DNA from: Phaeosaccion multiseriatum
Taxonomy: Eukaryota > Protista > Ochrophyta, other classes
Direction: 5' to 3'
Length of the DNA: 64,000 nt
Assembly: GCA_965112735.1 (NCBI GenBank)
Contig: OZ218950.1
Location: 3,658,001 to 3,722,000, forward strand
Positions 30,216 through 53,186 of the stretch are shown one piece after another. Numbering within the stretch: position 1 is the stretch's first letter; each line of letters begins with the position of its first letter. The notes beneath the pieces are model-generated. The model was not told where the DNA came from. It worked only from the letters and a program-made list of their open reading frames with translations, and ran no database searches. The position numbers and the translations under genes were made by a program.

Positions 30216-30231
30216 ACGACTGAGTAGTACT

Positions 30232-31433: not shown

Positions 31434-33458
31434 CTACTCTTCGGCAGAGGGAGGTAGCTGCCCCACATATGGCCCCACGTCCCTCCTCACCTTGTTCACC
31501 AGCGCTGTGCTCCACTTCATGCTCGCCATCGCCTCCTCAAGCAGAGCTGTCTCCTCCTTGCTGTCCTCCGCATCCTCCTCCCCCTCTTGGTCCCGTCCTT
31601 CTCCTCCTCCTCCTCCTCCCCGCTGGAAGTGTAGCAGCTTCTGCTGTTGCCTCGAGCACTGGATGAGCGCCTCCTCGAGCTCCTTCTCCAACCGCTGGGC
31701 CTTGTTCTTATCCCCCACCTCTCTCGGCGCCACAATCGCTCCGAGCCAAGGCTTCACCGCCGTGAACTCGTCCCCTCCGGACACGGCTCCACCCCCCCCC
31801 TCCAACAGATGGCCATGGGAAGTAGCAGGAGCGTAATCGTTAGCAGCAGCAGAAGCAGCAGCAGCCGCTCCAGAGGCGTTGGAATCCAGATCGAAGTCGT
31901 TGCCAGCCAAGCCGAGCGTGTCTACTTCTCCACCACCGCCATCGGATGAAAAGCATGAGGAGGGGGAGCGTGATGATGGTGATGAGGAGGATGCGTGTAC
32001 CCGTCTGTGTGCCGCAGCTCCCCTTTCATATTCCTCGTCATTCTCCTCCTCCTCCTCCTCCTCCTCTCGGACGTGCCTCCATTGGAAGATGCATCTGTCC
32101 AGTCCACCCGTAGAAATCAAGTATGTGTCCTCCTCCTCCTCCTCCTCCTCCTCCTCCTCCTCCGCCTCCTCCTCCTCCTCCGCCTCCTCCCTCTGTCCCT
32201 GCCACCCTCGCCTTAACTTGTGTTTGCCTCTAATCGAGTCCCTCCTTGTGTGCACCACATCGGCGCTGCTCCTCCTCCTCCCCCTCTTGCTGCTCCTCGC
32301 CCCCCTTGCCCCTCCTCCTCCTCCTCCTCCCTCAGCAGGCTCCGTCCCCACCCACCGCACATTCGTCACATGACTGGACTGCCCCCGAAACTCAAGACAA
32401 TTCGCGCCCTTTTGCAAACACGGGTACCGAAAGAGTTTGACCAGACCAAAGTCGTCGGCTGTCGCCAGCGTCAGCCCATCCCGTGTTCTGTCCACGGCAT
32501 TGACGTCCGTTCCGTCGGCCTCGGCGGGCCAAATGCCCTGCACCGGCCAACCCCCCCCCCACTATATACATATATGTAAGGTTATGTAAGGGTATGAGGA
32601 GGAGAGAGCAAAAGGGACCGAGGCTTTACTGAGGCAGTACGGATAGAAGGGACGGGATGGCGACCCACGCAAGCACGAGAGAAAGAAGCGTGGACAGACA
32701 GGCAGACAAGCTGACACAAAACAACTCGACCCGACTGACCTTCACATCACGCATAGAGGACGCCGAAGTGACCTGCTGCCCGTTGGTGGTCTGCGAGAAG
32801 AGTAGCTCGTATCCGCCGCAGGTACTCTGTAGGAAGCGCGAGTCCGAGGAAAAGTCCAGGTGTGTGAGGTATGAACTGTGCTTGTTGAACCTGCAGCGCC
32901 GCCGGAACTGCTGCTGCACTGCGTAGAGGTAAATCGACTTGTCGTGTGACGCCACCGCGAGGATCTGTTTGGGGGGGGAGGAGGAGGAAGAGGCAGTGGA
33001 GTAAGGCCAAGGCCCGGGAAAGGCGCACAGGCGCACAGGTGCAAGAGTTGTTATATGGTGGTGTGGGTCTTATTATTACACTTCGATACACCAATACAGA
33101 GCGAAGAGAGTGGGCAGGAGACATGTGTGTATACAGATAGGTACGCATTTGTGATAAATCCTTCCCTCCTTGCTGTTTCCTCTCCTCTCTCCTCGCTCCG
33201 CTCACCTTCCCATCTGGAGAGAACTTGATGTCGCTGATCCACCGCTTGGCGGCCTTTTCCTCCATCAGCGGCTCCATCTTGATCACGTCACTGTCACTGT
33301 CGCCTCGTGCCTCCCTGGAAATGGTATACACGCGCACCACTCCATCGCACTTGGCCTTCTTCTGCCCCACCCTTCCGCCCATGCCCACGGCTATCTGGCT
33401 ACCGTTGGGGGCGTACGCACACGCTCGGGCAATGCCCTTCAAGTCTAGAAGGTGGATC
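31434..33458 (-). pseudogene. EML5/EML6-like WD40 (HELP/TAPE) protein, downstream portion, truncated
   Basis: WISDIKFSPDG, ILAVASHD, HSSYLTHLDFSSDS, QGIWP..DGTDVNAVDR, TADDFGLVKLFRYPC, STGGLDRCIFQWR and GGDEFTAVKPWLGAI. It stops before the next HELP domain, next to LTR-like DNA. Confidence 0.8.
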
Positions 33459-36400
33459 TGATGCATACATCCCATTCATACATCCATTGGTCATTGAGAG
33501 AGAGAGGAGTGTGTGTGTGTGTGTGTGTGGGTGTGAGGGAGGGCGTGAGGGAGGAGGAGGACAGAAGATTATGAGTCATTCAGTCTCGAAAACGGCAGAA
33601 TAAGCTGAGTACGTAAGTACGTAGGATAGGCAGTGGCGATGGCGAGCAAATTTGGAAACACATGGTTTCGACTCCGATAGAGAGGATGGCAGCAGACGGA
33701 GGAGACAGAGACTCATAGATTGGGGGTCTGACTCAGTCACGGGCCGACTGCCTGACTGTCTCACTGACCGACTGACTGACTGACTGACTGACTGACCGAC
33801 TGACTGAGCCACTTACTCACTGCCTCACTGACCGACTGACCGACGGACTACCTGACTGACTGACCTGAGAGAGGCTGAGCAGCTGCGAGCTCAGAGAGAA
33901 CATTGCTTGGGGTCATGGGCCGTGTCCGCCCAGGGCCCGCTCCAAGACCGCCCAGGTCCATGTCTGTGAACAACTCACAATCACCTGCAAGTCAGTCAGT
34001 GAGCCAGTCAGTAGATGGGGCAATGGGACTGTCAGTCAGGCACGACGATGGCCTCTCTCTAAAAACCGCAGATGGTACTACTACCAGGAAGAGCTAAAGG
34101 CGGGCCATTGATATGCTATTTGATCAAACTGTGGGCATCAGGAAAATGAAGTCCCTTATACAAGGACTTATCCCAAGACCTTTAGGCCTTCTACACGGTG
34201 GCTTGGATAAGGCTTGTATTAGGCTTATCTTGCTGTCACCATCCATATCATATGGCTTCGCCACAAGCGTGGCCTGTCTGGTGCCGACTTGCGGTGTTCT
34301 ACGCCCATACAGTAGCCCCACCACAATGAGAGCAAAGCAGCCTCAACCGTTCGTCTCCATCTCCTGCCTTGCAATGCACCTTCTCGCCACAACCACACCC
34401 CTACTCAGTTAGTTCCTCATCTCGGCCCCCCTGTGCCTGACCGTGCCGACTCGCACGCGCTCTCCATCAATCACCACGCCACCTCGCTCATTCACGGAGT
34501 GGACGGCCGCACCCAGCCAGACACCACAGGTGCCTCTTACCCTCTTACCTTGTCCATGGTTGGTGAGAAGAACAACTTGAGCGAAGGGCGGGTGCAGCAG
34601 CTCGCGCTTGTCGTTGAGGGGCGGGGAATATCTGGGTCTCCTCGGCGTACGATAACGCACTGGCGCAACGCCGCGCAGCATATGCCCCCCCACAGCCTCT
34701 TGAAGCGAAGCTCCCGCCATAGCGCTTGTTTGGGACAGAGAATGACAGCGAGGGGGTAAGGGGGGGAGCGGGAGGGAGGGAGAGACAGGTCGAGGGAGAT
34801 TGATGCATAGGGAGAGAGGGATGGAGTGAGGGAGCGTGTGTGGGTGAAGTAGCGAGTGGGTGAGAGTGACGGAGCGAGTGAGTGAATACGGTCGTGAGTG
34901 AGTGAGTATGCAAGCGAGGGATTGAGAACGGGAGCTCCCTCCCGTTCTCACCTCTCCTTCACAATCGCGCGCGCACGCACGCCGTCTCTCCCCAAACGAA
35001 TCGCCCACTCATTCACTCACTTCCTCTCTACCTCAAAATACAACTCTCTCACCCACCCATCACTTCGCTACTCCCTCCCTCGCTCACCATTTCTCTTGTA
35101 CTCCCCTTTGTCGCCCACCTTCTCACTCTCACTCATTCCCTGGTTGGGAGACCCTGACTGACTGACCTGGTGCCCAGGGGTGGACATTGATGGCGTCCAC
35201 TAACGCCTTTGAATGCAAGGCCAAGCAGGCAACGCAAGAGCAAAGGCTCCCTACACCCCCCCTCGCCAGATGGGCTCTTACCTGCTTCATTGTGCGCACA
35301 CGTCGTCTCTGGAGGCCCGCGGCTTCATGTTCTGTGAGAGAAGGGGAGAGAAGTGTGACTCAGGGCCACGAGTGCTGTAGTAAGGGGCCTTCAGTATGTC
35401 ACCCCACCGCAATTGGATAGCTCTCCCATGCAAATTGCCCTTCCTCCCTCCTCCCTCTACATCCGCAGCTGTTGTCGAGCTCTCTTTGAAGCGCCTCTCG
35501 CTCTTTGCCCAATGCGTATGTCTTGTGTGTGCGTCTATGAGACACACCCTCCACTATCACAACACTCACTTGAATCTTCGAAGTGCTCATGTCCCTGCCT
35601 CATGGAGGCCCTAGAGATGGAGGAGACAATGAGAGGACGGATACTGTAGTACAGATACGAGAGAAGGGACTTGATATCTCAAGGTCCATTCCCAACTTCC
35701 GTGGGCCCCCCACCGTCCCTCTGTCCTCCCCGAGACTTGGGTGAGAAAGGCAGGGCAGGAAGGGATGGGATGGCAACGAAAGGCAGAGGTAAAAAAGGAT
35801 GGTCGCTAACCTGCAGTCTGAGCGCTGCCGCCAAAGTCGCAGTGGCAGAAGCAGCAGCAGGCAGGGGAGAAGAAGGCAGAGAAGACGAAGGCGAAGACGA
35901 ACAAGAAGTCCGCTGCCCCGTGAACCGAGGCTTGCAAGTAGCGCTGTGCATCGAGATTACACTTGAGTAAGCCCATCCCAAGGTTACACAGCGCCTTGCC
36001 CAGCGCGCGCGCTTGCCGGCTTAGCGGAGACGTAGAAACCGTCTGCGCCGAGCTGTCTACAGGGAGGGAGAGGATGGGCGGAGCAAGGAATGATGAGTCT
36101 CTCGCCTCTTCCTCACTCACACAATCAATGACTCACTCAGCCATTCATTCATTCACTCACCACCCTGTTCCACTTTGGGTCGTGAGAAGCATCAGCCCCT
36201 TTCCGCTCCCAAAGAGAGAGTCTGTGACATCTATCAGGATGATGTCGCTCCCCGCCCGCCGAAAGACCGTAGTGCTGCGGTGCGCCTGTGCTCAGAATGA
36301 GCCAGACCTGGAGATTTCGCTCATGGTTGTGCCCTGCGGTCCCGGCCGAAAGATGGTGATGAGCTTGAGGCGCTCTTAGACACCTTTCTGTGGAGGGGCT

Positions 36401-39201
36401 TGGACGATACCGTCTGCTCCGTTGCCGTTGCCAACTTTGGCGACAGCAAACAGCGGCGACGGGGATTTTAGGTGGCGTTCATGGAAGCGACAGTATATAT
36501 ATAGTGGGAAGGGAGGGAGAGGTTTTACTCTTAACGGGGTTTTTACCGTTACTCTTTTTTCTCCCCTCTTTCTTTTTGCCGCAAAGTAAAGAGGCAAGAG
36601 GCAGGGCGGAGGGCAGGGGCGGCGGAGAGGACGGAGAGGGCGGACCGGAGCAGCTCGACAGCAGAGAGAGGGAACGTGTCTGGACCTCGTCCGTCCAGCC
36701 AGCCATGGCTGGGCAAGAGGTAAGAGGGAAGAGGGCGACCACGAGCAGGGTGCCTGCCTGGCGTAATGTTTATCCAGTGCTAAGCTGACCTCCTATCCCG
36801 CTGCCCCACGCAGGGTTAAATAAGGCCGACGGGTGGGCCGCAGGAAAAACATGAGGTGAGCAGGCTGAAGTATGGAATGGGTGGGGAGCGAGAGCACTCA
36901 AATAACTCCCCCAGCTTCCCAACCCACGCGAAGGCCACAGAGGCTCAGGGTCCAAGAAGCTGGGGCGGGGGAGGCACAAAAAAAAGGAGGGATTGGGACA
37001 AGAGGCATGGGGCGTAAGAAGTGATTCGACGGGGCGAAGCGGACCCCACTGTGCCTTTTTCCCTTCCCTCCGCCCCTCGTTCCCTGGCCCTATCCCAGTC
37101 TGCGCCCGCCATGCCTGCTGGCGCCATCAAAAAGCCCGTCGCTCAGCCCTTTCCTGCCCAACCCTCCATATCCTTGGCCCGTCGTCACGAAAGGTGAACA
37201 ACAAGTCCTCGCGACCGCAGATGGTCAAGCGGCGGAGGAGGTAGGGACCTCCAGACTAAGGGGGGTATTGAGGGCGAATGACCCCTCAGTGCCGGGTGAG
37301 GCCTTGGAGAAGGACGAAAAGGCAGAAGACCGACCTCGCTGCATACGGGGGTTGAGATCGGGGCGAGGGTTGGAAGAGGATGAACAGGATATGGGCCCCT
37401 CCTTACTTGCAGACCTTGCAGACACTCCTTTGGAAGTGATCGGCAGCGCACCTCCCGAGGTGGCTTCCTTCGGGCCGCAGCTGCTCAGTAGTGTGGGGCC
37501 GGTACCTCCCTCCATTTTTAAAAGAGGAGGAAGGCACCGGCCTCACATATGGCGTCGACGCGGAAACCCAAGAGGCTTGTTGTGCACAAGAGACGTGTGT
37601 GCGTCGACCACTCCCTCCTTGCAGGCCATGGGCTTCAGCTTCGACGACGGAGAGTAGAATACCTACCTTGGCATGGATGGTATGCCTGCCTTTGCTTAGA
37701 TGGATTGGACACGGGCAGCGCACTGGCGTGACACCCCTCACAGCGGACGAGAAGGAGCAGGAGGGGAAGGCAATCAACCACTCTATCCCCGTCCGATGTG
37801 CCGCTGTCCGAACGGGGGGAGCGGCGGGCAAGGGGGGAAGTGACCTTTGTTCTCCCTTGTTCACGGCTAGCTGAGCAGTAAGTTATATAACTAAAAATAA
37901 AACTGCTACTTCCTCAAAGTCCATGGTGCTTGCTACTGCCGGCCAGGCGCCGCTCCCAATCCAGCCACAAGGTCTCCGGCCTCGCCCGCTCCTCGGAGCT
38001 GACGTAGATGGGGCATGAGTCGTTTGAGCGAGCGAGAGCCTGCTATTCTCTCCGGAAAAGGTCACTTTTGAAGCAAGCCCGCGCAGCAAAGACGGCGAAG
38101 AAGGGCGCACATCGTCCAGGGCATCGGCTCCCCCCCCCCCCCCGATAAGGAGCAGAAGCCTGAGGCGGCCTGCGACCGAAAGCAACAAGCCCCCCCGAAG
38201 CCAGCATAATGTCTCCCTCCCCCCCCCCCTGAGCCCCCCTGACAAGCCTGAAGCCCAGACCGCTGGCCTGCGGCGGCGCTATGGCCCAGAAGCCCGGAGC
38301 CCGACGTCGTCTCGCTCCCTCCGATTCTCTGTGACATGCTTGTTGTTGCCACCAGAGGCAAGCTCGCTCCTCCTCGTCCCCCTCGCACCATCGTCGTCGA
38401 GCTGAAACCATTATTATTTGGTTCTCCAATCGAAGAGTGGCCCCCCCGCCCCCCCCCCGGGGTTTGGCGACTTAGCGCCGAGAGCATCTCCCGCTCACGA
38501 AAAAACAAGCCCACAACACAGACAGCCACAGAGAGAGCAAGAAGCAAATACAACAGGTGCGTGTGCGTCGCGGGATGCTTCCATGGAGCACCCTCGCGCG
38601 TGCGTCATTGCCAGCAGCGAATGAGTGGCGTGGTGTGGAGCCCACCCTCTACGTCTACTTCCCCTCCCCCGCGCCTTCCTTGCTCTAACTCCGCGGCCTC
38701 TCCGCACCTCCCTCAGCAGACGAGCAGACAATCGAAATGTCCGACAATCGAAAGAACGCAGACAACGGCTCCTCTTCGGCGGCCGAGGAGGGCGGAGATT
38801 GGTTTGAAGTGACCAAACGGGGGAGGGCCATGCCGCGCACCGATGCCCGCCACAAACACATCGGGAACCGTTCCGCGCCCCCCACTTCCTCCTCCACCGA
38901 CGGGGCCACCTTCAGCCTCGACAGCGACGAGGACTTTCCCCGCCTTCCCGATAAGGCTTCGACAAACCGCTGCCTCGTTTCGCCCCGCACCGGGGCGAAC
39001 AACAATATCAACGCCCCTCCCTCCCGCGGGTGTGAGAATCGCCAAAACCAGTGCTATATGGCGGCTGCGCTTCAGCTGGTACGTAGATGCCGGGGCGACG
39101 AGGCCCGAGTCAAGCAAAAAGTGAACCTCCCGAGCTCGCTTTTCTCTCTCTCTTGCTTGCTTGCTTGCTTCCCAATTCAGTTTGGCTCCGCCATGCGGGG
39201 C

Positions 39202-39940
39202 AGCCCCACCTTGTGCCAGTCCGTCAAGAGCAAGGACAAAAGCCCCCTCGGGGTTGCAGCTGCGGCCCTCGGCGAGGCCATCAACAAGCAAGGCCCGCCC
39301 CTGCCCCTCCACGAGATGGACAAGCTGGAGAAGCTGCTCGCAGACAAGCGCGTATGCCACATGGGGGGGCAGAACGACGCCGGCAACGTCGCCGCTTCTG
39401 TCATGAACTACTGTGGGGCGGAGGACGTGGTCCTAACGGTTACGGCCGACGCCGTCATGAAACAGTCTATCCAGGACGCTGTCCAGGACGGCTTGTCGAG
39501 CAATATAGAAATGTCCAAGCCCACCTGTAAGAAGGCATCCTTTTGCTAGGCTGGCAGCTATCCACTGAATATTCACGGGGGTAGCTGCCAGCCTAGCAAA
39601 AGGATGCCTTCTTACAGGTGGGCTTGGACATTTCTATATTGCTCGACAAGCCGTCCTGGACAGCGTCCTGGATAGACTGTTTCATGATGGCGTCGGCCGT
39701 AACCGTTAGGACCACGTCCTCCGCCCCACAGTAGTTCATGACAGAAGCGGCGACGTTGCCGGCGTCGTTCTGCCCCCCCATGTGGCATACGCGCTTGTCT
39801 GCGAGCAGCTTCTCCAGCTTGTCCATCTCGTGGAGGGGCAGGGGCGGGCCTTGCTTGTTGATGGCCTCGCCGAGGGCCGCAGCTGCAACCCTGAGGGGGC
39901 TTTTGTCCTTGCTCTTGACGGACTGGCACAAGGTGGGGCT
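39202..39940. repeat. 739-bp near-perfect palindrome (324-bp arms around a hairpin element)
   Basis: 39202-39525 is the reverse complement of 39617-39940 except for two substitutions (39688, 39892). Confidence 0.95.
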
Positions 39941-39997
39941 ACCCCCGTGAATATTCAGTGGATAGCTGCCAGCCTAGCAAAAGGATGCCTTCTTACA
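39526..39997. mobile_element. 91-bp hairpin element, family A (39526-39616) plus a half copy (39938-39997); 4-bp TSD CACC
   Basis: TGTAAGAAGGCATCCTTTTGCTAGGCTGGCAGCTA-loop-TAGCTGCCAGCCTAGCAAAAGGATGCCTTCTTACA. The flanks are CCCACC| ... |CACCGCCGAG; removing the insert and one CACC restores the frame MSKPTAEYVMVIIN. Confidence 0.9.
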
Positions 39998-40029
39998 CAC
40001 CGCCGAGTATGTCATGGTGATCATTAACG

Positions 40030-40484
40030 TGAGTGCGGGGGTGGGTGAGTGTTTGCGTGCGCGCGTGTGGGTATGCGTGTGTGTGTGCGTGTTAGAAGTC
40101 GTGCTTTTGCTAGACTGGTACCTCCCGGTCTGAATTCAGAGGGTAGGTACCAGTCTAGCAAAAGCACGACTTCTAACATGCGTGCGTGTGGTGGGTGTGC
40201 GAGTGCACGTGTGTGGGTGTGGGTGTGGGAGAGAGAGAGAGCAAAAGCAAAGAGTGGGGGGGTCTGTGTATGTGTGTGTGTGTGTGTGTGTGTGCGTGTG
40301 AATGTGTGTGCGTGTGTGTGTGTGCGAGTGCACGTGTGTGGGTGTGGGTGTGTGAGAGAGAGAGCAAAGCAAAGAGTGGGGGGGTCTGTGTATGTGTGTG
40401 TGCGTGTGAATGTGTGTGCGCGCGAGTGAATGTGAACATGTTTGTGTGTGCGTGTGAATGTGTGTGTCAGTGTGTGTGTGTGTC

Positions 40485-40516
<32 letters not shown>

Positions 40517-41755
40517 CGTGTGTGTGTGTATGTGTGGGTGTGCGTGTGCGCGCGTGTGAATGTGTGTGTGTGTGCGTGTCAGTGTGTGTGTGTGTGCGCG
40601 CGTGTGAATGAATTGTGTGCGTGTGGGTGTGTGTGGGTGTGCGTGTGCGTGTGTGTGCGTGTGTGTGTGTGCGTGTGGTGTGCGTGCGTGTGGTGGGTGT
40701 GCGAGTGCACGTGTGTGGTTGTGGGTGTGGGAGAGAGAGAGAGAGAGCAAAGCAAAGAGTGGGGGGGTCTGTGTGCGTGTGTGTGTGTGTGTGCGTGTGG
40801 TGTGCGTGCGTGTGGTGGGTGTCGAGTGCGCGTGTGTGGGTGTGGGTGAGAGAGAGAGAGAGAGCAAAGCAAAGAGTGGGGGGGTCTGTGTGCGTGTGTG
40901 TGTGTGTGCGTGTGGTGTGCGTGCGTGTGGTGGGTGTCGAGTGCTTGTGTGTGGGTGTGGGTGTGAGAGAGAGAGAGAGAGAGCAAAGCAAAGAGTGGGG
41001 GGGTCTGTGTATGTGTGTGTGCGTGTGAATGTGTGTGCGTGTGCGTGTGTGTGCGAGTGCACGTGTGTGCGTGTGAATGTGTGTGTGTGTGCGCGCGTGT
41101 CAGTGTGTATGTGTGTGTGAATGTGTGTGCGTGTGAATGTGTGTGTGTGTGTGTGTGGGTGTGGGTGTGCGTGTGCGCGTGTGAATGTGTGTGAGTGTGT
41201 GTGCGTGTCAGTGTGTGTGTGCGCGCGTGTGAATGAATTGTGTGCGTGTGGGTGGGTGTGGGTGTGGGTGTGTGTGTGTGTGTCAGTGTGTGGGTGTGTG
41301 TGGGTGTGTGTGCGCGCGTGTGTGTGTGTATGTGTGGGTGTGCGTGTGCGCGCGTGTGAATGTGTGTGAGTGTGTGTGCGTGTCAGTGTGTGTGTGTGTG
41401 CGCGCGTGTGAATGAATTGTGTGCGTGTGCGTGTGTGTGCGTGTGTGTGTGTGCGTGTGCGTGTGGTGTGCGTGTGTGTGTGTGTGCGAGTGCACGTGTG
41501 TGGGTGTGGGTGTGTGAGAGAGAGAGCAAAGCAAAGAGTGGGGGGTGCGTATGTCTGTATGTCTGTGTATGTGTGTGTGTGTGTGCGAGTGCGCGCGTGT
41601 GTGTGTGGTGTGTGTGTGTGTGTGCGTGTGGTGTGCGTGCGTGTGGTGGGTGTGAGAGTGTGTGTGTGAATGTGTGTGCGTGTGTGAGAGAGAGAGAGCA
41701 AAGCAAAGAGTGGGGGGTCTGTGTATGTGTGTGTGGGTGTGCGAGTGCGCGAGTG
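40030..41755. repeat. Complex TG-rich intronic minisatellite with a recurring GAGAGAGCAAAGCAAAGAGTGGGGGG anchor
   Basis: Seven anchor copies separated by mutually related (TG)n/GCGT segments. It lies in intron 2 of the USP-LAGLIDADG gene. Confidence 0.9.
40090..40178. mobile_element. 89-bp hairpin element, family B; 4-bp TSD TGCG
   Basis: TGTTAGAAGTCGTGCTTTTGCTAGACTGGTACCT-loop-AGGTACCAGTCTAGCAAAAGCACGACTTCTAACA, flanked by TGCG on both sides. Confidence 0.88.
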
Positions 41756-43119
41756 TTAGTAGGGCTTTGAGCGGACTGAAAAAAAAAAGGCGCGAGCGGT
41801 TGCTTAAGACTAGGCCATTGACATAATACTAACCGTTGATTTTTCTTTTTCTTTTCTCTTTGCTCTGCCTGTTGCTTTGCTTGGAAACTCTCAGCGCTTG
41901 CGGAAGGCGAGCAAGAAGGAGGCGAGCAAGAAGGAGGGGAGCAAGAAGGAGGGGAGCAAGAACAAGACCGACCGATCGAAACCCCCCCCCCCGCAGGTCA
42001 TCAAAGCAAGATGTCGAGTCCTCCATCCACATTCCCGCACGCATGGAGTGGAGAGGCCTGTCCGTGGACGCCTCCGCCGTGCTGGTGCACCAAGGAGCTG
42101 ACGGTGCAGGGCACTTTGTGGCCCACTATAAGCACAGAGGACACTGGTACATGGCCGACGATGCAAGGGTGTGTCCGCATGAAATGGGTGAGCAAGCGCT
42201 CCTGAGGAGCGTGGAAGGTGGTGGGGACTGTGCCACCACCGTCCTGTATCGCGTCAGTGAGAGCAGCAGCTGCCCTCGCACCCAGCAGCTCCTGGATGTG
42301 GAGGCGAGGAGGAATGTCTTCATCATCCTCGTCCTCGCGACGGGCACCGAGCTTCATGATGAAGATCGGGATGGGGTGCTCTACAGCACCTTCACCATTG
42401 AGAGAGCCACTGAACTTGGTGGAGAAGAGGCCACCCTTGAGATGGTCACTCTCCGCGAGGATGGGGGTTTGGACTTCCCAAGGCAACGGATGGAGAGGGG
42501 CACGGGGGAAGGAGCAGGAGCAGCAGGAGGAGGAGAGGAGTGCCAGGGCTTCTGCCCTCGCACCCATTTCCTGCTCGAGGAAGAGACTAGGGCGCTGGGT
42601 GGTGAGAGATGCATCGTCGTCAAGCGCCAACCCGACGTACCACTCAACGAGCTGCGGGATGGTGTGCTTCTGGGCACGTTTACCACAGAACGAGCCCACC
42701 GACTGCATGGAGAGACCCCCCATGTGCTCGTCCATCTCGGAGCTGACGGAACCTTCCTCTTCCCATCAAACTTTCCCTGCGAGGCCATGGCGGACGAAGG
42801 GGTGGAAGAGAGCAAGAGGAGTGATGAGGCCTGCGACGGCCAGGCATTGTCTCCGGAGGGCATAGCAGCAGGTGGAGGGGGGCGGAGGGGTCGCGGGCAC
42901 AAGAGGAGTCGGAGCCGAATGGAGGGAGCAGGGATGGCTGCCGGCGGCGGCGGCGGCGGAGGAGGAGCAGCAGCAGCAGCAGCAGCAGGAGGAGGAGGAG
43001 GAGGAGGAGGAGGACGAGGAGGAGAAGGAGGAGGAGCAGGAGCAGGAGGACGGAGGGGTCGCGGGCAGAAGCGGAGTCGGAGCCGAATGGAGGGAGCAGG
43101 AGGAGGAGGGGGGGGGGGG

Positions 43120-43348
43120 GCTGGCGGCGGCGGCGGAGGAGGAGGAGGAGGAGGAGACAACGAAGACCACCGGGAGGAAGACGATGAGAGTGTGGCCGAT
43201 ACGGAACTGGAGATTGAGGAGGACTCGGAACCCCCCCTTCCGAGTCCTCCTCAATCTCCAGTTCCGTATCGGCCACACTCTCATCGTCTTCCTCCCGGTG
43301 GTCTTCGTTGTCTCCTCCTCCTCCTCCTCCTCCGCCGCCGCCGCCAGC
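43120..43348. repeat. Perfect fold-back inside coding sequence (111-bp arms, C7 loop)
   Basis: 43120-43230 is the reverse complement of 43238-43348. Confidence 0.93.
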
Positions 43349-44688
43349 TGGAGTACGGGGAGAAGGAGGAGGAGGACGAGTTGATGGCCCAAGCCCCTGC
43401 GGCCGGCCCCGGTGAGACGGAGGAGGGGGCAGTCATTGACCTCACCGGGATGAGCGACGACGATGGGGGTGCCGACCGGGGGGGCGACAGGCGCAGTCCT
43501 GAGCAGCAACAGGAACCACCAGTAATTGATATCGCCAGCAGCAGCGACGATGAGGATGAGGTAAGACGTGGGCTGATGCAGCAGGAAGACGTGCGTGCAT
43601 TGCTTACGGGTTGATTGGTTCTCTGCCCCCCCCCAGGACGAGGAGCAACAAGCTGATGGAGCAGGAAGCAGGAGTAGCGGCAACACCGTCAACAATGTGG
43701 TAAGCAAGGCAAGCAAGGGCTGGCTGCTTGCTGCCGCGCAGGGCCTTGCTTGCTCACGACTTTGATTTGTGTGCTGTCCCAACCTTGCTCGTGCACCAGG
43801 ACGTGGCTGCTGAAGTCAAGCAAATGCTGAAGAATTGGGGTGTCCGCGGGGAAAACCCAAAGCCGAAGGATGTGAAAAAAGCGGTAGGTGCTTTTGCTTG
43901 CTTGTGGCTGGCTGACACAGCTTGTTGCAGTCTTTTTTTTTTGCTAATTTTGGACCAACCCCCGCCCGCTGCTCAGTGCGACAACTATCTGGCAGGATAC
44001 CTGCTGTCCTCCACCACCCCCTACTGTGGGCGCCATGAGCTACCCCCTGGTGGGTACGAATGGGGAGGTGAGGCAGTGTGGCCCAAGGGCGGTAGAATTG
44101 TGCAGTTTACCTGCCCCGACTGCAAGGAGGTGGTCAAATGCCCCACCCTGCATACCAAGGAGGCAGGGGACATGGCGGCCAAGACGTTGTGGCGAACCCA
44201 CAAGTCTGGCTTTCCTGCGACCGGGGAGTCTGGGTCCGAGACCTTCAAGTTTTGCTCGGGGAATCACCCCGGGTTTAACGAGTTTGCGGCCGCAATGCGC
44301 CCTGGGGCAAACCCGGACGACTGCGACGACCATGGGAGGGACTTCATCCTCTCCAAGGGCAACGGCGAGACGGAGAAGCAGCTCCTCGCCGACCACTTGA
44401 ATCTTGTGGCCAAGGGTCGCTACTTCGGCCGCGGAACCAGCGACAGGAGCAGCGCCCCCCCCGAACTACTCAGGGGCTTTACGCTGTGGGGTGAGCTTCT
44501 CCGACACAATGGCGAGACGGGGAAGATCATTTCCTGCTTGGGGTTCCATGTGCTATCGTCCACGATGAGGACGGGGCCCATGGTGCTGAATGGACTGCAC
44601 AACGACCGGAGAGTAGACGAGGTTGGTACTAGTATGCGAGTGGCTGCCTCAGCCATTGCTTGCTTCTGCGTGGCTGTTACTCACACTG

Positions 44689-44745
<57 letters not shown>

Positions 44746-44756
44746 ATCTCTCACTG

Positions 44757-44834
<78 letters not shown>

Positions 44835-44886
44835 CCTCTCTCTCTCTCTCTCTCTCTCACTGCCTCTCTCTCTCTCTCTCACACTG

Positions 44887-44960
<74 letters not shown>

Positions 44961-44961
44961 C

Positions 44962-44994
<33 letters not shown>

Positions 44995-45036
44995 TCTCTC
45001 TCTCTCTCTCACTGCCTCTCTCTCTCTCTCACACTG

Positions 45037-45069
<33 letters not shown>
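44689..45069. repeat. (CT)n microsatellite punctuated by CACTGC
   Basis: Visible directly; lies inside intron 44622-45096. Confidence 0.95.
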
Positions 45070-45071
<2 letters not shown>

Positions 45072-47599
45072 TGCCTGTATCGTCCCTCGACTTTAGGTCC
45101 TTGAATCAGTGCACAACGCAGAGTGCTTCCCCCCAAGCACCCTACGCGCGATAATGGCCACGAGCCTCCTCTTCTCGAACGAGGCGCATGGACCCAAGGG
45201 AGCACAGTACAAGCAGGCCCCTCACGCCCAACTCTTGGACCAAGTTCTGCGGTTCAAGAACCATTCCGGGGATGCCAACAAACCCAACAAGTCTTCCATT
45301 TCTTTCCGAGACTTGGAATTCTTGAGCAAGACCGGCCTGCTCTCCCCGCACAAGCTCGAGGTCTGGAACCACCTCAACGAGCACTACCTCAGCAGGACAG
45401 GGTCCGGGCGTGCGCAGCTCAAGCTGCCCCACTGCAACCTGCACACCGTAGTGACACGAGGGCAGAACACCGAGGACGAGAAGCGGCGACTCAAGGGCGA
45501 CATACTGCAGTTGAAGACAAGGGAGCAGTTCGAAGCCTTTGTGACGCAGGCGAGCAAGCCAGACGGTTGGGGCCACGAGGACACGAAGCACGTCATGAAC
45601 CTGTGGGACCAGTGCCCAAAGACGAGCATTCGTACGCCGAAGGAGGCGCTGGACTTCAATCTGGAGCAGGTGAGCGGTTGCTTGTTGACGTGTTTAGTTG
45701 GTTGACTGCCCTCGCTCAAACGATCGATCCCCTCCACCCCTGCCCTCAACAACCCAGGACTCCGTCAAGCTGCTTCGCTGGCTGTACAAACGATTCCTAT
45801 CGTCGCCGGAGGCGAAGGTCGCTCTCGTCGTCGCCAATCGGCCCGACTACCTGCTCAGTGGGAAAGCGCCTGGCTCAAAGGGGCCCGAGGGAAAGAACAT
45901 CTACCTCCAGATGTTCAAGTCAAAGGAAGGGCGCAAGACGTTGGCTGTGAACAACGGTATGGCGGGCGCCGATGGATGCTTTTCGTTTAACAGGGCGGCC
46001 GTGGAACTCAGAGATGAGCCGCCAACGACCAAGTACTTTCGCTTCCACTTCGACGGAGGCTTTGCCGGCAAGCCGTTCCTGATAGTACGCAAGACGAGAA
46101 AAGACAAGCATGGCAATTTCCTCCGGTCGCAGCGCATGCTCTACCACAACCCCACGGTATGTAGCGTTTCTTTTTGCTTCTCACTTGACTCGCTCCTGCG
46201 TAGCTAACCTCGTGGCTTGCACGCCCGCACCCACACCAGGCCCTCGCTGTCCTCCACCTCTATTCGGGGTGCAGGAGCAGTAAGACGTTCCAGTTTTACC
46301 CACGTCTCCGGTGCCTCTTCCTCTGGACCCTTGCTGGCGAGCCGGAGAGGCCGCTCACGGACCCCTTCATGGCCGAGATCATCATCTCCTTCATCATCGG
46401 CCTCTCCGATGGTGAGTAAGATTGCCCATCATCGCTCAGCAATGCGCCCTCACGTACTTGACTTGGCCTGCCTCACGCAAAGCTTGCTTGCCCCTTTCCC
46501 CTCCCTCCCTCGCTCAGGGGACGGCTCCTCCGCCCTCATGTACCTCTCGGCCGACGGGAGAAGGATGTGGAGGGCCGTCTTCTCCATTCACTCGGGGGTG
46601 AAGGAGGAGGTCGAGCAGATCCGAGAGATGCTCCCACATGCCGTCAAGCAGGTGACCGGCAATGAGCTTAACAAGCGGGGGAGGATGTACCCCCACCTGT
46701 ACCGCACGAAGGACGACGCGGACCGCGTTACGGCCATGAGCATCGCAGTCTGGTCGGTCAGCTGGACCACTCGCCACGACTGGATCCTCATCCACCAGGC
46801 CTTTAACACGGTCAAGCCGCAGCCGCGCCTGTCACGGAAGGTCGTCGACGACCCGACCAACCGGTACGTGCCGGACCACGTTCCGGGAAAGTAGATTTAC
46901 AGCGACAACGACGACGAGCAGAAGGAGGAGCAGAAGGAGGAGCAGCAGCAGCGGGAGGAGGACGACGACGAGGAGGAGGAACGGATCAGCGAGGAGCAGA
47001 TCCTGCAAGACATCCTCGCCGCCAGGGACGAGGACGGTGAGAACGAGGACGAGCACGACAACCGAGGAGTCTGAGCAGGAGCTGGCGACGGCCCTGAGGT
47101 TGCTTCCGGTAGCTACCTTCTCCTCCTCCTGCTGCTGGTCGCGCTGCCAAGGCATGTACGTCAGTTCCGAGGACCTTGTGTGGGCAGCAGCAGGAGCAGG
47201 AGCGAGCAGCAGCAGCAGCAGCAGGAGCAGCAGGAGCAGTAACACACAGTACAAGTAGTAGTGGTAAAAGACAAGTAATATTAGTTATAGAAGTCACGAG
47301 CCTCGCCACAGCCAAGCAAGCAAGCGGGACGCAGCTACATTTGCCTGCCGCCGTCTCTCCGCCGCCACCGACCGCGCGAGCGAGCCGTCCCTGCTCTATA
47401 CACATGGTGGCCGTCAGGGGCCGCTCGCGTGCTACAGGTAGGGGCGCAAGCTTGGCGTGGACTAGAACAATTGATATTAGAATGCGTTCCGATGCGTGTG
47501 CGCGCGCTTGCCGGCCGGTTCTCGTCTCCAGCCAGGGGGGAAGGGCTGCGGAACCGTTCGGGCAACCCTCGCTGCCTCTTGCTCTCCGTGGTCTTGGGG

Positions 47600-48443
47600 C
47601 CGGGCTTGTCCAAGAAGAAGGAGTCTCCCCTCCCTCCTGCTCCTCCTCCTGCTGCTCTTGTTCCTCGAGGCGGCGAGCCGTATCCCCCACCAATTGATTA
47701 TACGTCTTCATGGCGCCCTTCAAGTCGCCCCGCAGCTCGCAGTCCAGTGCCCTGCGCGTCTCCTCTACAGTGCTCGCCCTTGCAGACAACCCTAACAAGA
47801 CCTCCTTCTCCCCCAGTTCGGCGTACAGTCTGCTCAGCTCCAGCCACGACACCCGCTCCTCCTTCTCGTCCTGCTTCTCCTCGCCGGCCTCTGTATCACC
47901 AACCGCACCACCTCCACCTCCACCACCCCTCTTGGACGTGATGTGCGCTGCCCCCTTACTCCCTCTCCCCCTTGCTGTGGTCATGCTCCTCTGCTGCTTG
48001 GCCTGCTTGGCCACGATGCTGGGGCCGGAGTGGCAATTCAGACTCCGAATAGCCGAGTTGGCAATGAGCGAAGGAGGCAAACGCAACGGCATGGGGGCAG
48101 CAGGAGCAGCAGCAGTCGTAGCAACAGCAGTTGGTGACACAGAAAGCGTCGCCACCACCCGGCACGCCGCGAGCAGGCTCCTTTGACACTCTTGTCTCTC
48201 ATGCTGGTGTATCACCAACTGCTGCTGCTGTACCACCAAGTGGTGATCCTGCTGGTTCTGCTCACGCCCCGTCCCCACACCTGGAAGCGCGCTTCCTCCT
48301 CCTCCCCCGACGTATAGACGCCTGAAGAGCTGCACGAAGAGCTCCTTTGCCACTCCTCCATGGAGCATGGCGAGGTGCTGCAGGGGCTTTAGTACGTCCC
48401 TGACAGGAATCTCAATGTCCGGGAGCTCCCCTGCCGATACCGC
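47600..48443 (-). pseudogene. PRKDC: Isolated exon of DNA-PKcs (region leading into the FAT domain)
   Basis: (RYRQ)GELPDIEIPVRDVLKPLQHLA...AKELFVQLF and WLELSRLYAELGEKEVLLG...TRRALDCELRGDLKGAMKTY match recalled DNA-PKcs segments (YRxGDLPDIQI...PLQ; WxELAKLY...ALLAE..DY..A...Y). Acceptor AG at 48444-48445 and a 1-nt shift in a G run. No other PRKDC exons were seen. Confidence 0.75.
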
Positions 48444-49054
48444 CTGCGTGCGGACAAAAGGAGGGGGGGAGGGAGTAGGGGCAAGTTTTCAAATTTTCAC
48501 TTGCGTGTCACTTTACGCAAACTGCTTGTACTAGAACAGCGTACTCTGCACTATTCTACTACCGGTGCGTGTGACAACCTCCCCTCCCCCCCGCCTCCGT
48601 CCAAACAAGTGTTTGGACCATCGAAACAGGTCACAGGTCCACCCAATCCACCTCTACATATGTACAATCTCACGAACCCTAACGCACCTAAACATGGCGT
48701 CCTTCGGCGGTCTTCCGTCCTTTGCCGTGGCGCCTTCACCCGTACCAGCCCCCTCCATGCGACTGCTGTGTAGCGCCGCCCCGTCACGCCTCCACCATCG
48801 TCGGCACCGCTGTCTCCGCCAATGTTACGCAAGAGCAAGGAGGTGTCCTGGACCTGGGAAGGGTACGCCGCGGTACTGCCCACAGCCTCCTCCTCCCCCT
48901 CCTTGCTGGGTTTGTCTCCAGCTAGAGTCCTGCGGCCCCACCTGCGCGCTGCCGTTCTTGACCATGCTACTGGGGAGCCCCCCCGCCCCTCCTCCTCCGC
49001 CCACAGTCTGACTCGTCGTCCACTCACAGTCCAAACCTTGGTCGGACTAGTATA

Positions 49055-49288
49055 GGCATACAGGCATACAGGCACACGGGCACACACACAGGCATATAGG
49101 CATACAGGCATACGGGCATACAGGCATACAGGCATACATGCATACATGCATACAGGCACACAGGCATACAGGCATGCAGGCATACAGGCACATATGCATA
49201 CAAGCATACAGGCATGCAGGCACACAGGCATACAGCCAAAAAGGCATACAGGCATACAGGTATACAGGCATACAGGCATGCAGGCATA
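49055..49288. repeat. 8-bp tandem repeat (CAGGCATA)n, intronic
   Basis: Visible directly. Confidence 0.9.
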
Positions 49289-51479
49289 GGGGTAGGTGTG
49301 CGGCTCATATCTTCGACGCTCTGACCTTAGTGGCGCTGAGTGCATTGACGGGCCCCTCGTGAGCCTTGTGCACCTTGGCCACCCTGCGCCCCTCCCATGT
49401 GTACAAGTGCCCGCTCGCCGTGCCCGTTACGAGTAACCGCCCCGCTCTTCCTTCTCCTCCTTCTCCTCCTCCCCCCCCACCACCACCACCACCACCACCA
49501 CCTCCTTGTCTGTCCTGCTTTCCCCCGTCACTCGGAGAGGAGGAGGAGGAGGAGGGGAGGGGCAGGGAGGCTGCGCACACGCAGGGCTGGATGCAAGCGT
49601 CTCCCTTGTGGCCGAACATTCCCTTCTTGCCCTTGAGAGAGCGCCCAGACATGGCCCAGAACTTGACGTGGTTCACACCGCCCGTCACCAGCGAGTTCTG
49701 CCAGCAGCAGAGGGAGAGGAGAGGAGAGCAGAGGAGAGGGCGGGACGGGGCAGGAGAGGAGAGGAGAGGAGAGCAGAGAGGGGCAGACGGGCCGTGAGTG
49801 TGACGGTGTGGGTGAGAAGGTGATGATGGGGGGGAGGAAGGGTGGGGTGGGAGTGGGGAGGGGGTGGGGTGGGAGTGGATGAATGCTGCGCGCAGCCTGA
49901 CCTTCTTTCACGCCTCCATGGGAGGGGGAGCTCCCTTTCCCCACTTCATCTTGCTCGACCTCAAATAACGGCACCACAAGTAAGCAACCTCTGCACGCAG
50001 CATTGCCTTCTCCTCCCTCCCTCCCTCCCTCTCTCCCTCCCTCCCACCCATCCCTCGCACCTTCTTACCCTCCTAACCCCCCCCTCCTTCCACACACAAC
50101 CCACCTCGTCTGTCCAATGCGCAAAGAGCACCTTGTTGCTATCCCCCCTCCCCGAGGCCAGCAGAGAGACATTGCTCCACGCCCCCCCCCGGTCCGCCCA
50201 CACGGCGTGAGAATGCTCATCGTCCTGCCCCACACTGGCCAGCCGCGTGCCCCCCGGGGAGAAAGCCAGCGCCAAGATCCCCCGAGTGTGGAAGCCCTGA
50301 AGCGTCTGGAGGTGATGTCCCGAGGCGCTGTCCCACACCCTAATGGCGGGGCGCTTGCCAATCTGCCCCGTTGCAATGTAACGGCGATCGCTGCTGATCG
50401 CCAGGGAGATGATGTCATCGGTGTGGCCCTGATGAAAGCGTTGCTCCCTACTGCTTCCACCGCCGCCACCACCACCACCACCACCGCTCCTGAGGTTGCT
50501 GCCTGATCCGTCTCCTTCTTCCTCTCCTTCTTCACAGTCTTGTTCCTCGTCTTGTGCCTCCCCCCCCACCCCCCCTGCCTACCGGACTGCGCTGAAGCAG
50601 CACTCCCACCGTGGCCGCGTGGTAGGCAATGTCCCCTGTAGCCGTGTACCAAAGGTTGCCCCTACAATCGTGGCTGCGATAACCGTGGATCCACTCCAAG
50701 TGGAGGGCGATGGCGGGGGCGCCGGGGGTTGTCTGTGGGCGGGTACGTGGGTACCCTGACCGCCCCGAGCCAAGGCTTTATTGCCATGAACTCATCCCCT
50801 CCCCCTCGGCCCCCTTCCAGCAGCAACCCCCCGCCTCCTCCTCCTCCTCCTTCTTCTTCTTCTCTGCCAACGCTACCACCGCCTCCTCCTCCGCCCTCGC
50901 CTCCTCGCACGCCCCCTAGTCTCCTCCCCCCTCCTCCTCCGGCTCCCGCCCCTCCCGCCGCCCCTGGTCGTCCCTTGCTTCGCTGCTGCTGCTGCCGGAG
51001 GAGCAATAGGGGCAAATCGTCGCCAAACTCGTCCCAGCTTCCGTCTACTCCCCCCCCTCCCACCCCATGCTGCTGTTGCTGCCGCGGATGCTGAGAAGCA
51101 TAGGTTGACGGAGGTAGAGAGGAGGAGGATGTCGTAGCTACAGCCGTCTCACGCACAGACATTTCGTGGCGCCACTGAAAGACACAGCGGTCGTTACCCC
51201 CCGTTGTGATGAGGCATTCGTCTCCGGCGGTGAAGCAGCACTTGGTCACGTGGCTGTGTAGTGTCAAGTCGGATCGGCGAGGGCGTAGAACAGAGGGGGA
51301 CGGTAGCATGGGAGGTAGGTAGGTAGGTGGGAGGTACGTGGGTAGGTAGGTGAGAAGGTGAGAAGGTAGATGGATAGGCAGGGTGAGGTGAGATGCGCGG
51401 GTAGGCAGGTAGGTCGGTAGGTGGGTAGGTGGGCAGGGATAGGTATGGAAAGAATGAGACAAAACCAATTGTACCAATG

Positions 51480-51765
51480 CGTGTACCTCTACATACCCGT
51501 ACGTATGCCTCTACATACCCGTATGTTTGCCTCTACATGCCCGAAAGTATGCCTCTACATACCCGTACGTATGCCTCTACATACGCGTATGTTGGCCTCT
51601 ACATGCCCGTACGAATGCCTCTACATGCCCGTACGTATGTCTCTACATACCCGTATGTTTGCCTCTACATGCCCGTATGTATGCCTCTACATGCCCGTAC
51701 GTATGTCTCTACATGCCCGTATGTATGCCTCTACATGCCCGTACGTATGCCTCTACATGCCCGTA
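51480..51765. repeat. 22-bp minisatellite (TATGCCTCTACATGCCCGTACG)n in an EML intron
   Basis: About 13 units. The flanking exons splice to GHSSHVTKC. Confidence 0.9.
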
Positions 51766-52047
51766 CCTGCTATGCCCCCTTGCCTCCAGGAACTGCGCCC
51801 CCACAGACACGCAGGGCCAGCGGAAGAGCTTCACGAGGCCGAAGTCGTCAGTCGTCGCCAACACATTCCCTGTGGAGGAGGACCAGGCAAAGGAAGGGGG
51901 GGGGGTGGCAAAGGAAAGGGCAGGGGCAAGGGCAAGGGTATTATGGCAGCGCATTTCAAGACAGGGTCAGAGCGGAGATTGCGCCGTGAGGATGGTAGTT
52001 GATGGGTTGGTGAATAGGATGTTAAGAGGACTACGCACACATCGCAA

Positions 52048-52098
<51 letters not shown>

Positions 52099-53114
52099 GC
52101 ATGTGACCTTGCCACCGATTTTGGCCAAATGCCCTGCACGGCCCAGCCCAGCACGCAGCTCTCAGAGGCCCAGTGAGCGCCTCGCAGCTCCCTTGCTGAG
52201 GCAACTTGCTTGCCTGTTGACGCGTCGGCGAAGATTAGCTCGTAGGCCCCGCAGTTGCTGGTAGGGCAAGAAGAGAGAGTGGAAGTAAAGACCGAGTGAA
52301 GAACGGTTCATTAAGAGAGCGACAGGGGGGAAGACAGCTTCATTGCGTAACCTCTCCTTCCTCCCCTCCCTCCCTCACTCACTCACTCACCTCCGTATGA
52401 ACTGCGAATCGGCGGAGAAGTCCAGGTGCGTGACGTAGGAATTGTGGCGGTCCATCTTGGCGCGCAGCTTGAGCGTTACAGAATGAAGGGAGGATGATGT
52501 TACAGAAGCACTTCCCTTTCTTCCACGAAGGCCTCCCACAGGGTATAGGGGGGAGGTGCGAAGCCGCGGCGAGAGTGGCCCCGTCCGGCGAGAAGCGCAC
52601 GTCGCTGATCCACTGCTTGGCGTGCCGCTGCCGGGCGGAAACCACCTCCCTCAGTCCCTCCCTTCGCTCACCAGCAGATGGCACTCTATCCAACCGTCGT
52701 TCTGGTATTGTAGGCATACTTCGCTGACTCTAGAGAGAAAGGTTTTCCGAGATATACACAGTAACTGTAAGAAGGGGAGGGAGAAAGAAAAAAAGGAGGA
52801 AGGAATGAAGCATGTCAATGAAAAAGCCCCCCGGGAGCCCAAAAAAAAAGGTGCAAAAAATAGAACCCCGGGGGGCCCGAGAAGTGGAAAAAATCGAACC
52901 CCGGGGGGCACGGGAAAGCAGGCTACAAAGACAATACGAGGCTTCAGTAGCCTTTAAGCCCCTTCGAGAGGTCGTGAGCACAGCACACTGCCGATAGAAG
53001 CTCACAGGAGAAGAAGGGATCAAGAGCCGAGGGAGAAAAAAAAAAAAAAAAAGCAAAAAAAAAAAAAAAAACCCCGGGGGTACGGATAAAAAAGGCCATC
53101 GGGGGGTTTTGATC

Positions 53115-53186
53115 CGTCAAAACGGGGAATCGAACCCCGATCTCATCCGTGAAAGGGACGCATGATAACCATTACACTATAATGAC
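53115..53186 (-). tRNA. tRNA-Glu(TTC), possibly a pseudogene
   Basis: GTCATTATAGTGTAATGGTTATCATGCGTCCCTTTCACGGATGAGATCGGGGTTCGATTCCCCGTTTTGACG has an anticodon arm CGTCC-CTTTCAC-GGATG and a T arm CGGGG-TTCGATT-CCCCG. A T6 terminator lies ~20 nt downstream. There are two T-T mismatches in the acceptor stem. Confidence 0.85.

Follow-up and report, generated by a model that had tools for sequence, protein, structure and literature searches.

A multicopy nuclear gene of the ochrophyte Phaeosaccion multiseriatum predicted to join a compact USP-type core to a probable LAGLIDADG-type domain

Can one chromosomal gene of a protist encode both a ubiquitin-specific protease (USP) and a LAGLIDADG-type domain, and, if so, does such a gene behave as a selfish element? 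The question is raised by a locus at positions 38737–46894 of a 64,000-nucleotide (nt) stretch of the genome of Phaeosaccion multiseriatum (GenBank assembly GCA_965112735.1, contig OZ218950.1, positions 3,658,001 to 3,722,000 of the forward strand), referred to here as the window. An earlier note, made from the letters of this stretch, had proposed that the locus is a spliced nuclear gene fusing a USP deubiquitinase to a double-motif LAGLIDADG endonuclease, and a candidate selfish element. The reading that we favor, and to which we give roughly an even chance, is that the locus is one member of a multicopy nuclear gene family confined to its lineage, with a product that runs from a USP core to a C-terminal LAGLIDADG-type domain. 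The family is multicopy, the nuclease fold is likely but unproven, and selfish behavior is plausible but undemonstrated.

The locus resolves into ten exons on the plus strand, with GT donors and AG acceptors throughout (borders read from the sequence and checked by script). Exons 3 to 10 (41997–46894) join into a single unedited open frame of 1,291 codons that extends from the USP His box to the stop codon across seven GT-AG introns. Exons 1 and 2, as first drawn, meet exon 3 with a phase mismatch because exon 2 carries a 476-nt insertion (39526–40001). Two models each yield one open reading frame (ORF). In Model A, the insertion is removed and the donor GTGAGT at 40029 is paired with the AG acceptor at 42005-6, giving 1,526 amino acids (aa). 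In Model B, the sequence is left unchanged and a donor at 39527, at the start of a foldback element (T|GTAAGA), is paired with the acceptor at 42009-10, giving 1,516 aa. The earlier note had described nine GT-AG introns and one frame of ~1,560 codons, reached by removing one insertion and correcting one homopolymer shift. The borders, the single frame, and the insertion in exon 2 all stood, but the homopolymer correction is unnecessary in both models. The GC content of third codon positions (GC3) is 0.76–0.89 in exons 1, 2, and 6–10, against a GC content of 0.51–0.59 in the introns, and is weak in exons 4 and 5 (0.57 and 0.61); this coding bias backs the reading frames. The measured introns are 76–475 nt long, except for the 2-kb intron 2 (40029–42006; candidate AG acceptors at 41995-6, 42005-6, and 42009-10), which is filled by a compound (GT)n/(GA)n microsatellite of 1.7 kb (~40030–41780). 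Similarly, a (CT)n microsatellite (0.47 kb) fills intron 6 (44622–45096).

After splicing, the C-terminal 335 residues carry two LAGLIDADG-type motifs: LAVNNGMAGADGCFSF (45941–45988), which lies in exon 8 (45758–46156) together with a four-strand beta region, and FIIGLSDG|DGSS (46390–46531). Exon 9 (46240–46411) supplies the linker and the helix of the second motif (…AEIIISFIIGLSDG), and exon 10 (46518–46894) supplies DGSS, a predicted beta-beta-alpha-beta-beta succession, and the stop codon (46892-94). The second motif is cut between DG and DGS by the 106-nt intron 9 (46412–46517, GTGAGT…CAG), exactly where the earlier note had placed the interruption. The two motifs that it had described are also located as claimed: they start 122 residues apart (indices 1037 and 1159, counted from 0, in the product of exons 3–10), and both keep the Asp at motif position 8 (NNGMAGADG and IIGLSDGDG). 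A generic LAGLIDADG pattern has three matches in ~128,000 codons (six frames of the 64 kb), two of which belong to this gene family, and the spliced second motif also fits the pattern. Given only three matches in so many codons, a second motif would fall within 150 residues by chance with a probability of ~0.002.

The evidence for a LAGLIDADG half-domain is concentrated in the second half. Language-model neighbors were collected for exon 10, a query without the motif helix; among the 100 best named ones, 78 are LAGLIDADG_1/2/3 clusters, the best being a ‘putative homing endonuclease’ (0.92). For profile comparisons, a reference set was assembled from viral-contig ORFs with the pattern LAGFxDGDG (n = 97; ten of those checked are Pfam LAGLIDADG_1/_3, and a few ORFs match the pattern by chance), and 110 single-domain relatives were added. 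A half-domain hidden Markov model (HMM) built from the viral set matches the 1,291-aa product in one place only, namely motif 2 (E 0.0025 in a one-sequence search). Aligned by hhalign to the viral-set half-domain profile, the spliced second half gave a probability of 85.8% (P 5.4e-6); the alignment has 72 columns and takes in the helix, beta 1-beta 2, and alpha 2. Motif-anchored shuffles scored 24.2 ± 2.2 against 31.9 for the real sequence, which none of 200 reached (p <0.005). The resulting z of ~3.5 lies at the weak end of true members, as judged from genuine partner halves used as positive controls (z 3.7–25.7). The AlphaFold (AF2) model of exon 10 has the order beta-beta-alpha-alpha-beta-beta, which, at low confidence, is compatible with a LAGLIDADG half. 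We consider it quite probable that the second half, at least, forms a LAGLIDADG half-domain, and somewhat less so that the whole C-terminus is a two-motif pseudo-dimer. Of the LAGLIDADG enzyme announced in the earlier note, the second half is backed by profiles, shuffles, and language-model neighbors, but the first half gained no support and no curated model matched.

The N-terminal part carries the landmarks of a USP in their usual order. Exon 1 (38737–39078, GC3 0.76) contains the start codon, a polar and acidic N-terminus, and the Cys box GCENRQNQCYMAAALQL (39028–39078), the motif being the basis of the assignment. The main part of exon 2 (39181–39525, ending at 39525/6; GC3 0.83) contains GGQNDAGNV (39364–39390), the counterpart of the USP QQDA box; the insertion-free reading adds 40002–40028 (…AEYVMVIIN), followed directly by the donor at 40029. 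Exon 3 (42007–43560, with alternative starts at 41997 and 42011) holds the His and Asp boxes (42076–42171) and the TTVLYRV end (42235–42255). The Cys box GCENRQNQCY, the QNDA box GGQNDA, HQGADGAGHF…WYMADDARV, and TTVLYRV include the catalytic Cys, His, and Asp, and the Cys box, the QNDA box, and the end agree by eye with the USP family consensus. The His-box exon matches Pfam UCH (PF00443) with E 1.5e-4 and 21.9 bits at profile positions 202–241, and 13 of its 14 PDB matches are USP-type deubiquitinases (E 6e-4 to 0.01); the USP matches comprise the SAGA DUB-module USP, USP5, USP4, USP15, TssM, USP25, and USP47. The assignment to USPs (C19) made in the earlier note is borne out for the His-box exon, with an atypically short core. 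We accept the region as a USP relative, though an unusual one, and do not assume standard ubiquitin protease activity.

The earlier note had left room for a single-copy host gene, and the data argue for many copies instead. In four public DNA sequencing runs compared with the stretch, word depth is 5–6x higher over 45814–45999 than over the rest, and the contigs are fragmented by many variant letters, some copies having 1-nt deletions. Within the window, a palindromic pair of partial copies (29406–30842) reproduces 45410–46035, from the last part of exon 7 across intron 7 to motif 1 in exon 8. The two decayed copies are joined tail to tail at ~30229, share 89–93% identity with the main copy, and are interrupted by stop codons. 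Since these fragments retain the intron, the family has been copied as DNA and not via RNA. Among the copies, changes cluster at 46550–46589 (A>P, R>T, S>Q by three adjacent bases, and H>N), in the beta 1-beta 2 hairpin that follows motif 2. In LAGLIDADG enzymes, the hairpin after the motif is the part that reads DNA bases.

Several results weigh against this reading. The public runs are all DNA, and contigs cross all three introns examined, including intron 9, with no splice joints; the predicted fusion, a single spliced product joining the USP part to the nuclease part, is supported only in silico. The 27 variant letters between copies (eight synonymous, 19 non-synonymous) are near neutral, with no sign of purifying selection. 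In the USP part, the Pfam UCH score, obtained with the His-box exon only, is below the gathering cut-off (21.9 vs 23.9 bits), and the Cys-box exon alone has no Pfam or PDB match, leaving the Cys box to its motif. The core is short, with ~165 aa from the catalytic Cys (residue 106) to the His of GHF (residue 273), and has ~50 aa where the fingers subdomain is expected, compared with the ~300 aa or more of a full palm-thumb-fingers core. Searches of 1.84 billion representative proteins and of metagenomes revealed no homologue, which leaves conservation unusable as evidence. Specifically, phmmer of exon 10 against the representative proteins found no relative, and exons 10 and 8 found none in JGI metagenome contigs and viral contigs. 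The sole phmmer match, a bacterial Big_12 repeat protein, was judged a chance match, and one viral match (L120), an RHS-type toxin tail that shares a single peptide pattern, was rejected.

For the C-terminus, the contrary results are more numerous. The hhalign score of the second half is carried mostly by the motif itself; against a second profile, from the single-domain family, 34 of 200 shuffles reach the score of the second half, with no excess, and exon 10 alone is negative by hhalign against a seven-sequence profile. An HMM of 99 single-domain sequences detects the motif alone, and the two halves of the domain show no similarity to one another. For the first half, hhalign yields a non-significant probability of 5.8% (14 of 200 shuffles score as high); the language-model neighbors of this half are unrelated and of SymE/MazE type at low score, and it is without the usual helix between the two hairpins (beta 2/beta 3). 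On unspliced, exon-wise pieces, PF00961, PF03161, PF14528, and PF05204 gave no match to E 10, and sequence searches of Pfam, PHROG, NCBIfam, and PDB found no LAGLIDADG family. The Pfam and AlphaFold/Foldseek checks proposed in the earlier note, run on unspliced pieces, returned no LAGLIDADG match, and the two single exon pieces modeled with AF2 reached a predicted local distance difference test score (pLDDT) of 36.7 and 40.8, which makes the Foldseek result for the second meaningless.

How far do these results favor other explanations? The alternative that survives best, though we consider it unlikely, is that the window copy is a dead pseudogene and that part of its apparent structure, the two near-perfect palindromes, is an artefact of long-read assembly. 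The window holds four short-spacer palindromes in 64 kb (39197–39945, 43120–43348, 29406–30842, and 26458–26955), three of which are in, or derived from, the USP-LAGLIDADG family. Two have arms that are 99–100% identical (recent, or an assembly artefact) and spacers of 7–15 nt, and one has arms that are 90–92% identical (old and real). The near-identity of the arms and the short spacers speak for this alternative, as do the interruption of exon 2 by the 476-nt insertion and the 1–2% divergence from the window sequence seen in the DNA contigs that cover the greater part of the stretch. Against this, the insertion has a structure of its own: it comprises a 91-nt foldback element, an inverted copy of 39205–39525, and half a foldback element, with CACC on either side of the whole. 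This 4-bp flanking repeat, together with the recurrence of the foldback element at 61221–61309, argues against an artefact. The perfect 111-nt inverted duplicate in exon 3 (43238–43348, a copy of 43120–43230) adds 37 codons exactly in frame, and the 1,291 codons downstream of the insertion are fully open. The arrangement of the palindromes suggests fold-back repair or template switching, and the window copy may be crippled unless the fold-back insertion is spliced out. The foldback repeat, ~91 nt long with ends TGTAAGAAGG…CCTTCTTACA, occurs at 39526–39616, 39938–39997, and 61221–61309, with a related sequence at 40087–40181, and one copy lies precisely where exon 2 ends. In appearance, the repeat resembles miniature inverted-repeat transposable elements (MITEs).

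It is improbable, in our judgment, that the C-terminus lacks a LAGLIDADG fold, its motifs being look-alikes in a lineage-specific domain with no role in DNA cleavage. In its favor, no curated model matches any piece, a canonical helix is missing between beta 2 and beta 3 of the first half, the neighbors of that half are of SymE/MazE type, and the hhalign scores are largely motif-driven. Furthermore, pairwise phmmer of the spliced C-terminus against the 97 viral pattern ORFs stays within the range of shuffles. Look-alikes, however, fit poorly with the rarity of a second motif at this distance, with exon 10 neighbors that are overwhelmingly LAGLIDADG clusters in a piece from which the motif helix is absent, and with a signal beyond the motif that no shuffle reached. 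Moreover, canonical phage LAGLIDADG proteins themselves score just 22–56 bits in Pfam.

An alternative of similarly low standing is a host gene family, domesticated or expanding, in which the domain serves a host process as a sequence-specific DNA binder or as a programmed nuclease, as in HO, and the copies are ordinary segmental duplicates. The host-like codon bias and the many spliceosomal introns agree with this. So do the lack of terminal repeats and transposase, the position in a region rich in duplications, with gene fragments and retroelements around it, and the occurrence of a palindromic duplicate outside the family (26458–26955). On the other hand, the copies include decayed fragments and frameshifted variants, the differences between them look neutral, and very large databases hold no orthologue in other organisms.

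Less probable again are two adjacent genes: a USP-repeat-SIM protein that ends in a retained intron 3 (stop at 43612–14) and a nuclease protein that starts at an internal ATG, e.g., at 45155. Besides the matching runs being DNA only, the tiny exons 4 and 5 with their weak GC3 speak for a break here. Frame 0 continues for 17 codons into intron 3 before the stop, an in-frame ATG follows the exon 7 acceptor, and the partial copies at 29.4–30.8 kb span the nuclease side only. This is countered by the junctions of exons 3–10, which are canonical, in frame, and stop-free in seven of seven cases, by the phase-0 symmetry of exons 4 and 5, and by exon 6, which is strongly coding-biased and has no start of its own near its acceptor. 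Should the domain turn out inactive, or the parts belong to distinct genes, the locus would still represent an orphan gene family that evolves fast and shows unusual fold-back rearrangements.

Two further explanations can be set aside briefly. A transposon was rejected: comparison of the 5-kb flanks of the gene gave no terminal inverted or long terminal repeats, there is no transposase, integrase, or reverse transcriptase domain in the ORFs flanking it and no group I or II self-splicing intron around it, and the copies keep their introns and so are not retrocopies. An organelle-derived insert was rejected because GC3 is 0.76–0.89 and the introns are spliceosomal. In the same vein, exon-wise pieces gave no Hint or Hom_end match, and the earlier statement that neither a transposase nor an intein splicing domain is present was confirmed and extended by these searches.

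The family reading leaves the middle of the predicted protein to be described. Two ~95-aa repeats follow the USP part in exon 3 (from 42271 and 42553), together with Gly/Ala/Glu low-complexity sequence that includes two basic motifs, GRG(H/Q)KRSRSR. A sequence resembling a SUMO-interaction motif (SIM), AVIDLTGMSDDD, lies at 43429–43464, and PVIDIASSSDDEDE begins at 43519; exon 4 (43637–43699, 63 nt, phase 0/0) provides the acidic tail of the second SIM. Both AVIDLTGMSDDD and PVIDIASSSDDEDEDEE fit the PIAS-type SIM, with a hydrophobic V/I-V/I-D-L/I core and then Ser/Asp/Glu. Exon 5 (43800–43883, 84 nt, phase 0/0) leads to exon 6 (43977–44621, GC3 0.77), which is rich in Cys and His (CDNY…C-G-R-H, FTCPDCKEVVKCPTLH, FCSGNH). 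Its pattern, …C-G-R-H…, CPDC-x6-C-x3-H, and C-S-G-N-H, may bind zinc. Exon 7 (45097–45669, GC3 0.80, with the internal ATG at 45155) precedes the nuclease part. These middle features have no detectable homologue in a search with exon 6 or in Pfam searches of the pieces. The N-terminus, being acidic and polar, is unlike a presequence; combined with the basic motifs, this suggests that the protein is nuclear and not organellar.

In general terms, the product of the proposed gene would be a protein of ~1,520 aa built of a compact C19 core with the fingers largely missing, two ~95-aa repeats, linkers with motifs resembling nuclear localization signals (NLS), two PIAS-type SIMs, a Cys/His region, and the LAGLIDADG-type domain with both of its metal-binding aspartates. 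The likeliest course is as follows. (i) Targeting: the N-terminal parts would bring the nuclease module to SUMO- or ubiquitin-marked chromatin. (ii) DNA recognition: the C-terminal domain would act as a site-specific DNA-binding or DNA-cutting module. (iii) Propagation: the gene would spread as DNA, or be copied as such, in the manner of the free-standing nuclear homing-endonuclease genes WHO/HO. The LAGLIDADG fold, nuclease activity, SIM and deubiquitinase (DUB) function, and selfish spread are inferences only. A bolder version, which we regard as a long shot, is that the family represents a new class of nuclear selfish gene: an intron-bearing, free-standing, homing-type LAGLIDADG nuclease that carries its own DUB/SUMO module, with which it would steer the repair of its own break or survive it. 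Nearby traces would then be footprints of cutting and homing, comparable to the FBA1 relics for WHO; these would include the fold-back palindromes in or beside the family copies, a DNA-PKcs fragment that lies tail to tail with the gene, and a 15.8-kb gap in an EML gene.

The surroundings are GC-rich eukaryotic nuclear DNA. The window has a GC content of 0.55–0.64 and contains GT-AG introns of short length, extended microsatellites, Gypsy elements, and ordinary host genes. Among the latter are CDC48-like exons at 6.6–10.7 kb, EML beta-propellers, and an ORF at 3536–4720 whose best relatives (55–65% identity) are found in marine metagenomes and MMETSP transcriptomes, the named ones being from diatoms (Detonula, Entomoneis), a dinoflagellate, and an ochrophyte. 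These relatives point to a probable marine protist or alga of stramenopile type. The DNA-PKcs-like gene fragment (47650–48488, minus strand) is tail to tail with the USP-LAGLIDADG gene and matches PRKDC residues 2921–2976 (E 1.4e-4). It consists of exons at 47650–47950 and 48300–48488 with a coding-type GC3 and, by eye, an LPDI…AK.LF segment upstream, and it is a fragment only. EML (TAPE) exons lie on the minus strand at 49308–52729 and 31437–33475. The EML unit appears to be split, with its first propeller at 50.5–49.3 kb and its second at 33.5–31.4 kb, and ~100 residues of the unit were not found. The 15.8-kb gap contains the whole USP-LAGLIDADG gene and the DNA-PKcs fragment. The measured introns, by contrast, are 76–475 nt long, apart from the 2-kb intron 2. 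Hypothetically, the gene could have arrived as part of a large insertion.

Other features of this half of the window are repeats and a single RNA gene. A minisatellite at 48900–49300 and 51200–52200 encodes repeated …ACMPVCLY… peptides on the minus strand and adjoins the EML exons. A tRNA-Glu (TTC) gene at 53114–53187, minus strand, is the sole Rfam match in the window. Gypsy-type ORFs on the minus strand occupy 55900–59500 and 63200–64000, with RVT_1 and RNase H in 57964–59499 and integrase-like segments at 56035–56493 and 63218–63883.

How does the gene compare with known systems? The earlier note knew of no description of such a fusion, and our literature search likewise yielded none; as far as this search goes, the combination of a USP, putative SUMO-binding motifs, and a probable LAGLIDADG domain is undescribed. 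Partial parallels exist for each part. The Burkholderia protein TssM (PDB 8ssi/8pz3), a USP with reduced fingers, shares a compact core and a weak similarity in the His box only (E 0.04), in an unrelated organism and context. Wolbachia CifB is a bacterial or prophage-encoded toxin with an antidote partner that combines an Ulp1-type (CE clan) protease with PD-(D/E)XK nuclease domains (PMC7783169). The likeness to CifB is that of a selfish-element protein with a deubiquitinase-type protease and a nuclease; the sequences are unrelated.

Among LAGLIDADG proteins, the OTP51-type splicing factors of plant organelles are encoded by nuclear genes with spliceosomal introns, but these are single-copy, organelle-targeted RNA maturases whose catalytic residues are often degenerate. 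In contrast, the gene described here is multicopy, keeps both aspartates, has no presequence-like N-terminus, and has NLS-like basic motifs and SIMs. With the LAGLIDADG homing endonucleases (Pfam LAGLIDADG_1/2/3; I-CreI, I-SceI, and I-AniI types), it has in common two motifs ~120 aa apart and a D-G followed by a beta hairpin. Those enzymes have 150–350 aa and come from organelles, phages, archaea, and group I introns, whereas the present domain forms the C-terminal end of a predicted nuclear protein of ~1,500 aa, misses Pfam thresholds, and has a first half without the inter-hairpin helix.

To our knowledge, yeast HO and WHO are essentially the only described LAGLIDADG genes that reside on nuclear chromosomes outside introns and inteins. 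The WHO elements and the HO endonuclease of budding yeasts are intein-derived, with Hint remnants, have a C-terminal zinc finger, and target FBA1 or MAT (Coughlan et al. 2020, PMC7282813). They are the closest described system, sharing with the present gene a nuclear chromosomal location outside an intron or intein, a LAGLIDADG-type domain (a probable one here) joined to a Cys/His region that binds metal (putatively so here), many copies with pseudogenes, and copying at the DNA level (PMC7282813). They differ from it in having neither spliceosomal introns nor a protease nor SIMs, where the USP-LAGLIDADG gene has nine introns, a USP, and SIMs, and in the supergroup of the host. In addition, the present gene gives no Hint signal, and its Cys/His region precedes the nuclease (exon 6), unlike the C-terminal zinc finger of WHO/HO; its protein ends 125 residues after motif 2 (aa 1395–1406 of 1,526), with no C-terminal Cys/His cluster. 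If the reading of the locus as a USP-LAGLIDADG gene holds, it would be a natural nuclease coupled physically to a modifier of the marks of DNA-damage signaling, of relevance to the choice of repair pathway and to engineered nucleases. It would also be a second independent case, next to HO and WHO, suggesting that free-standing homing-type nucleases colonize nuclear genomes more widely, here in a distant protist lineage.

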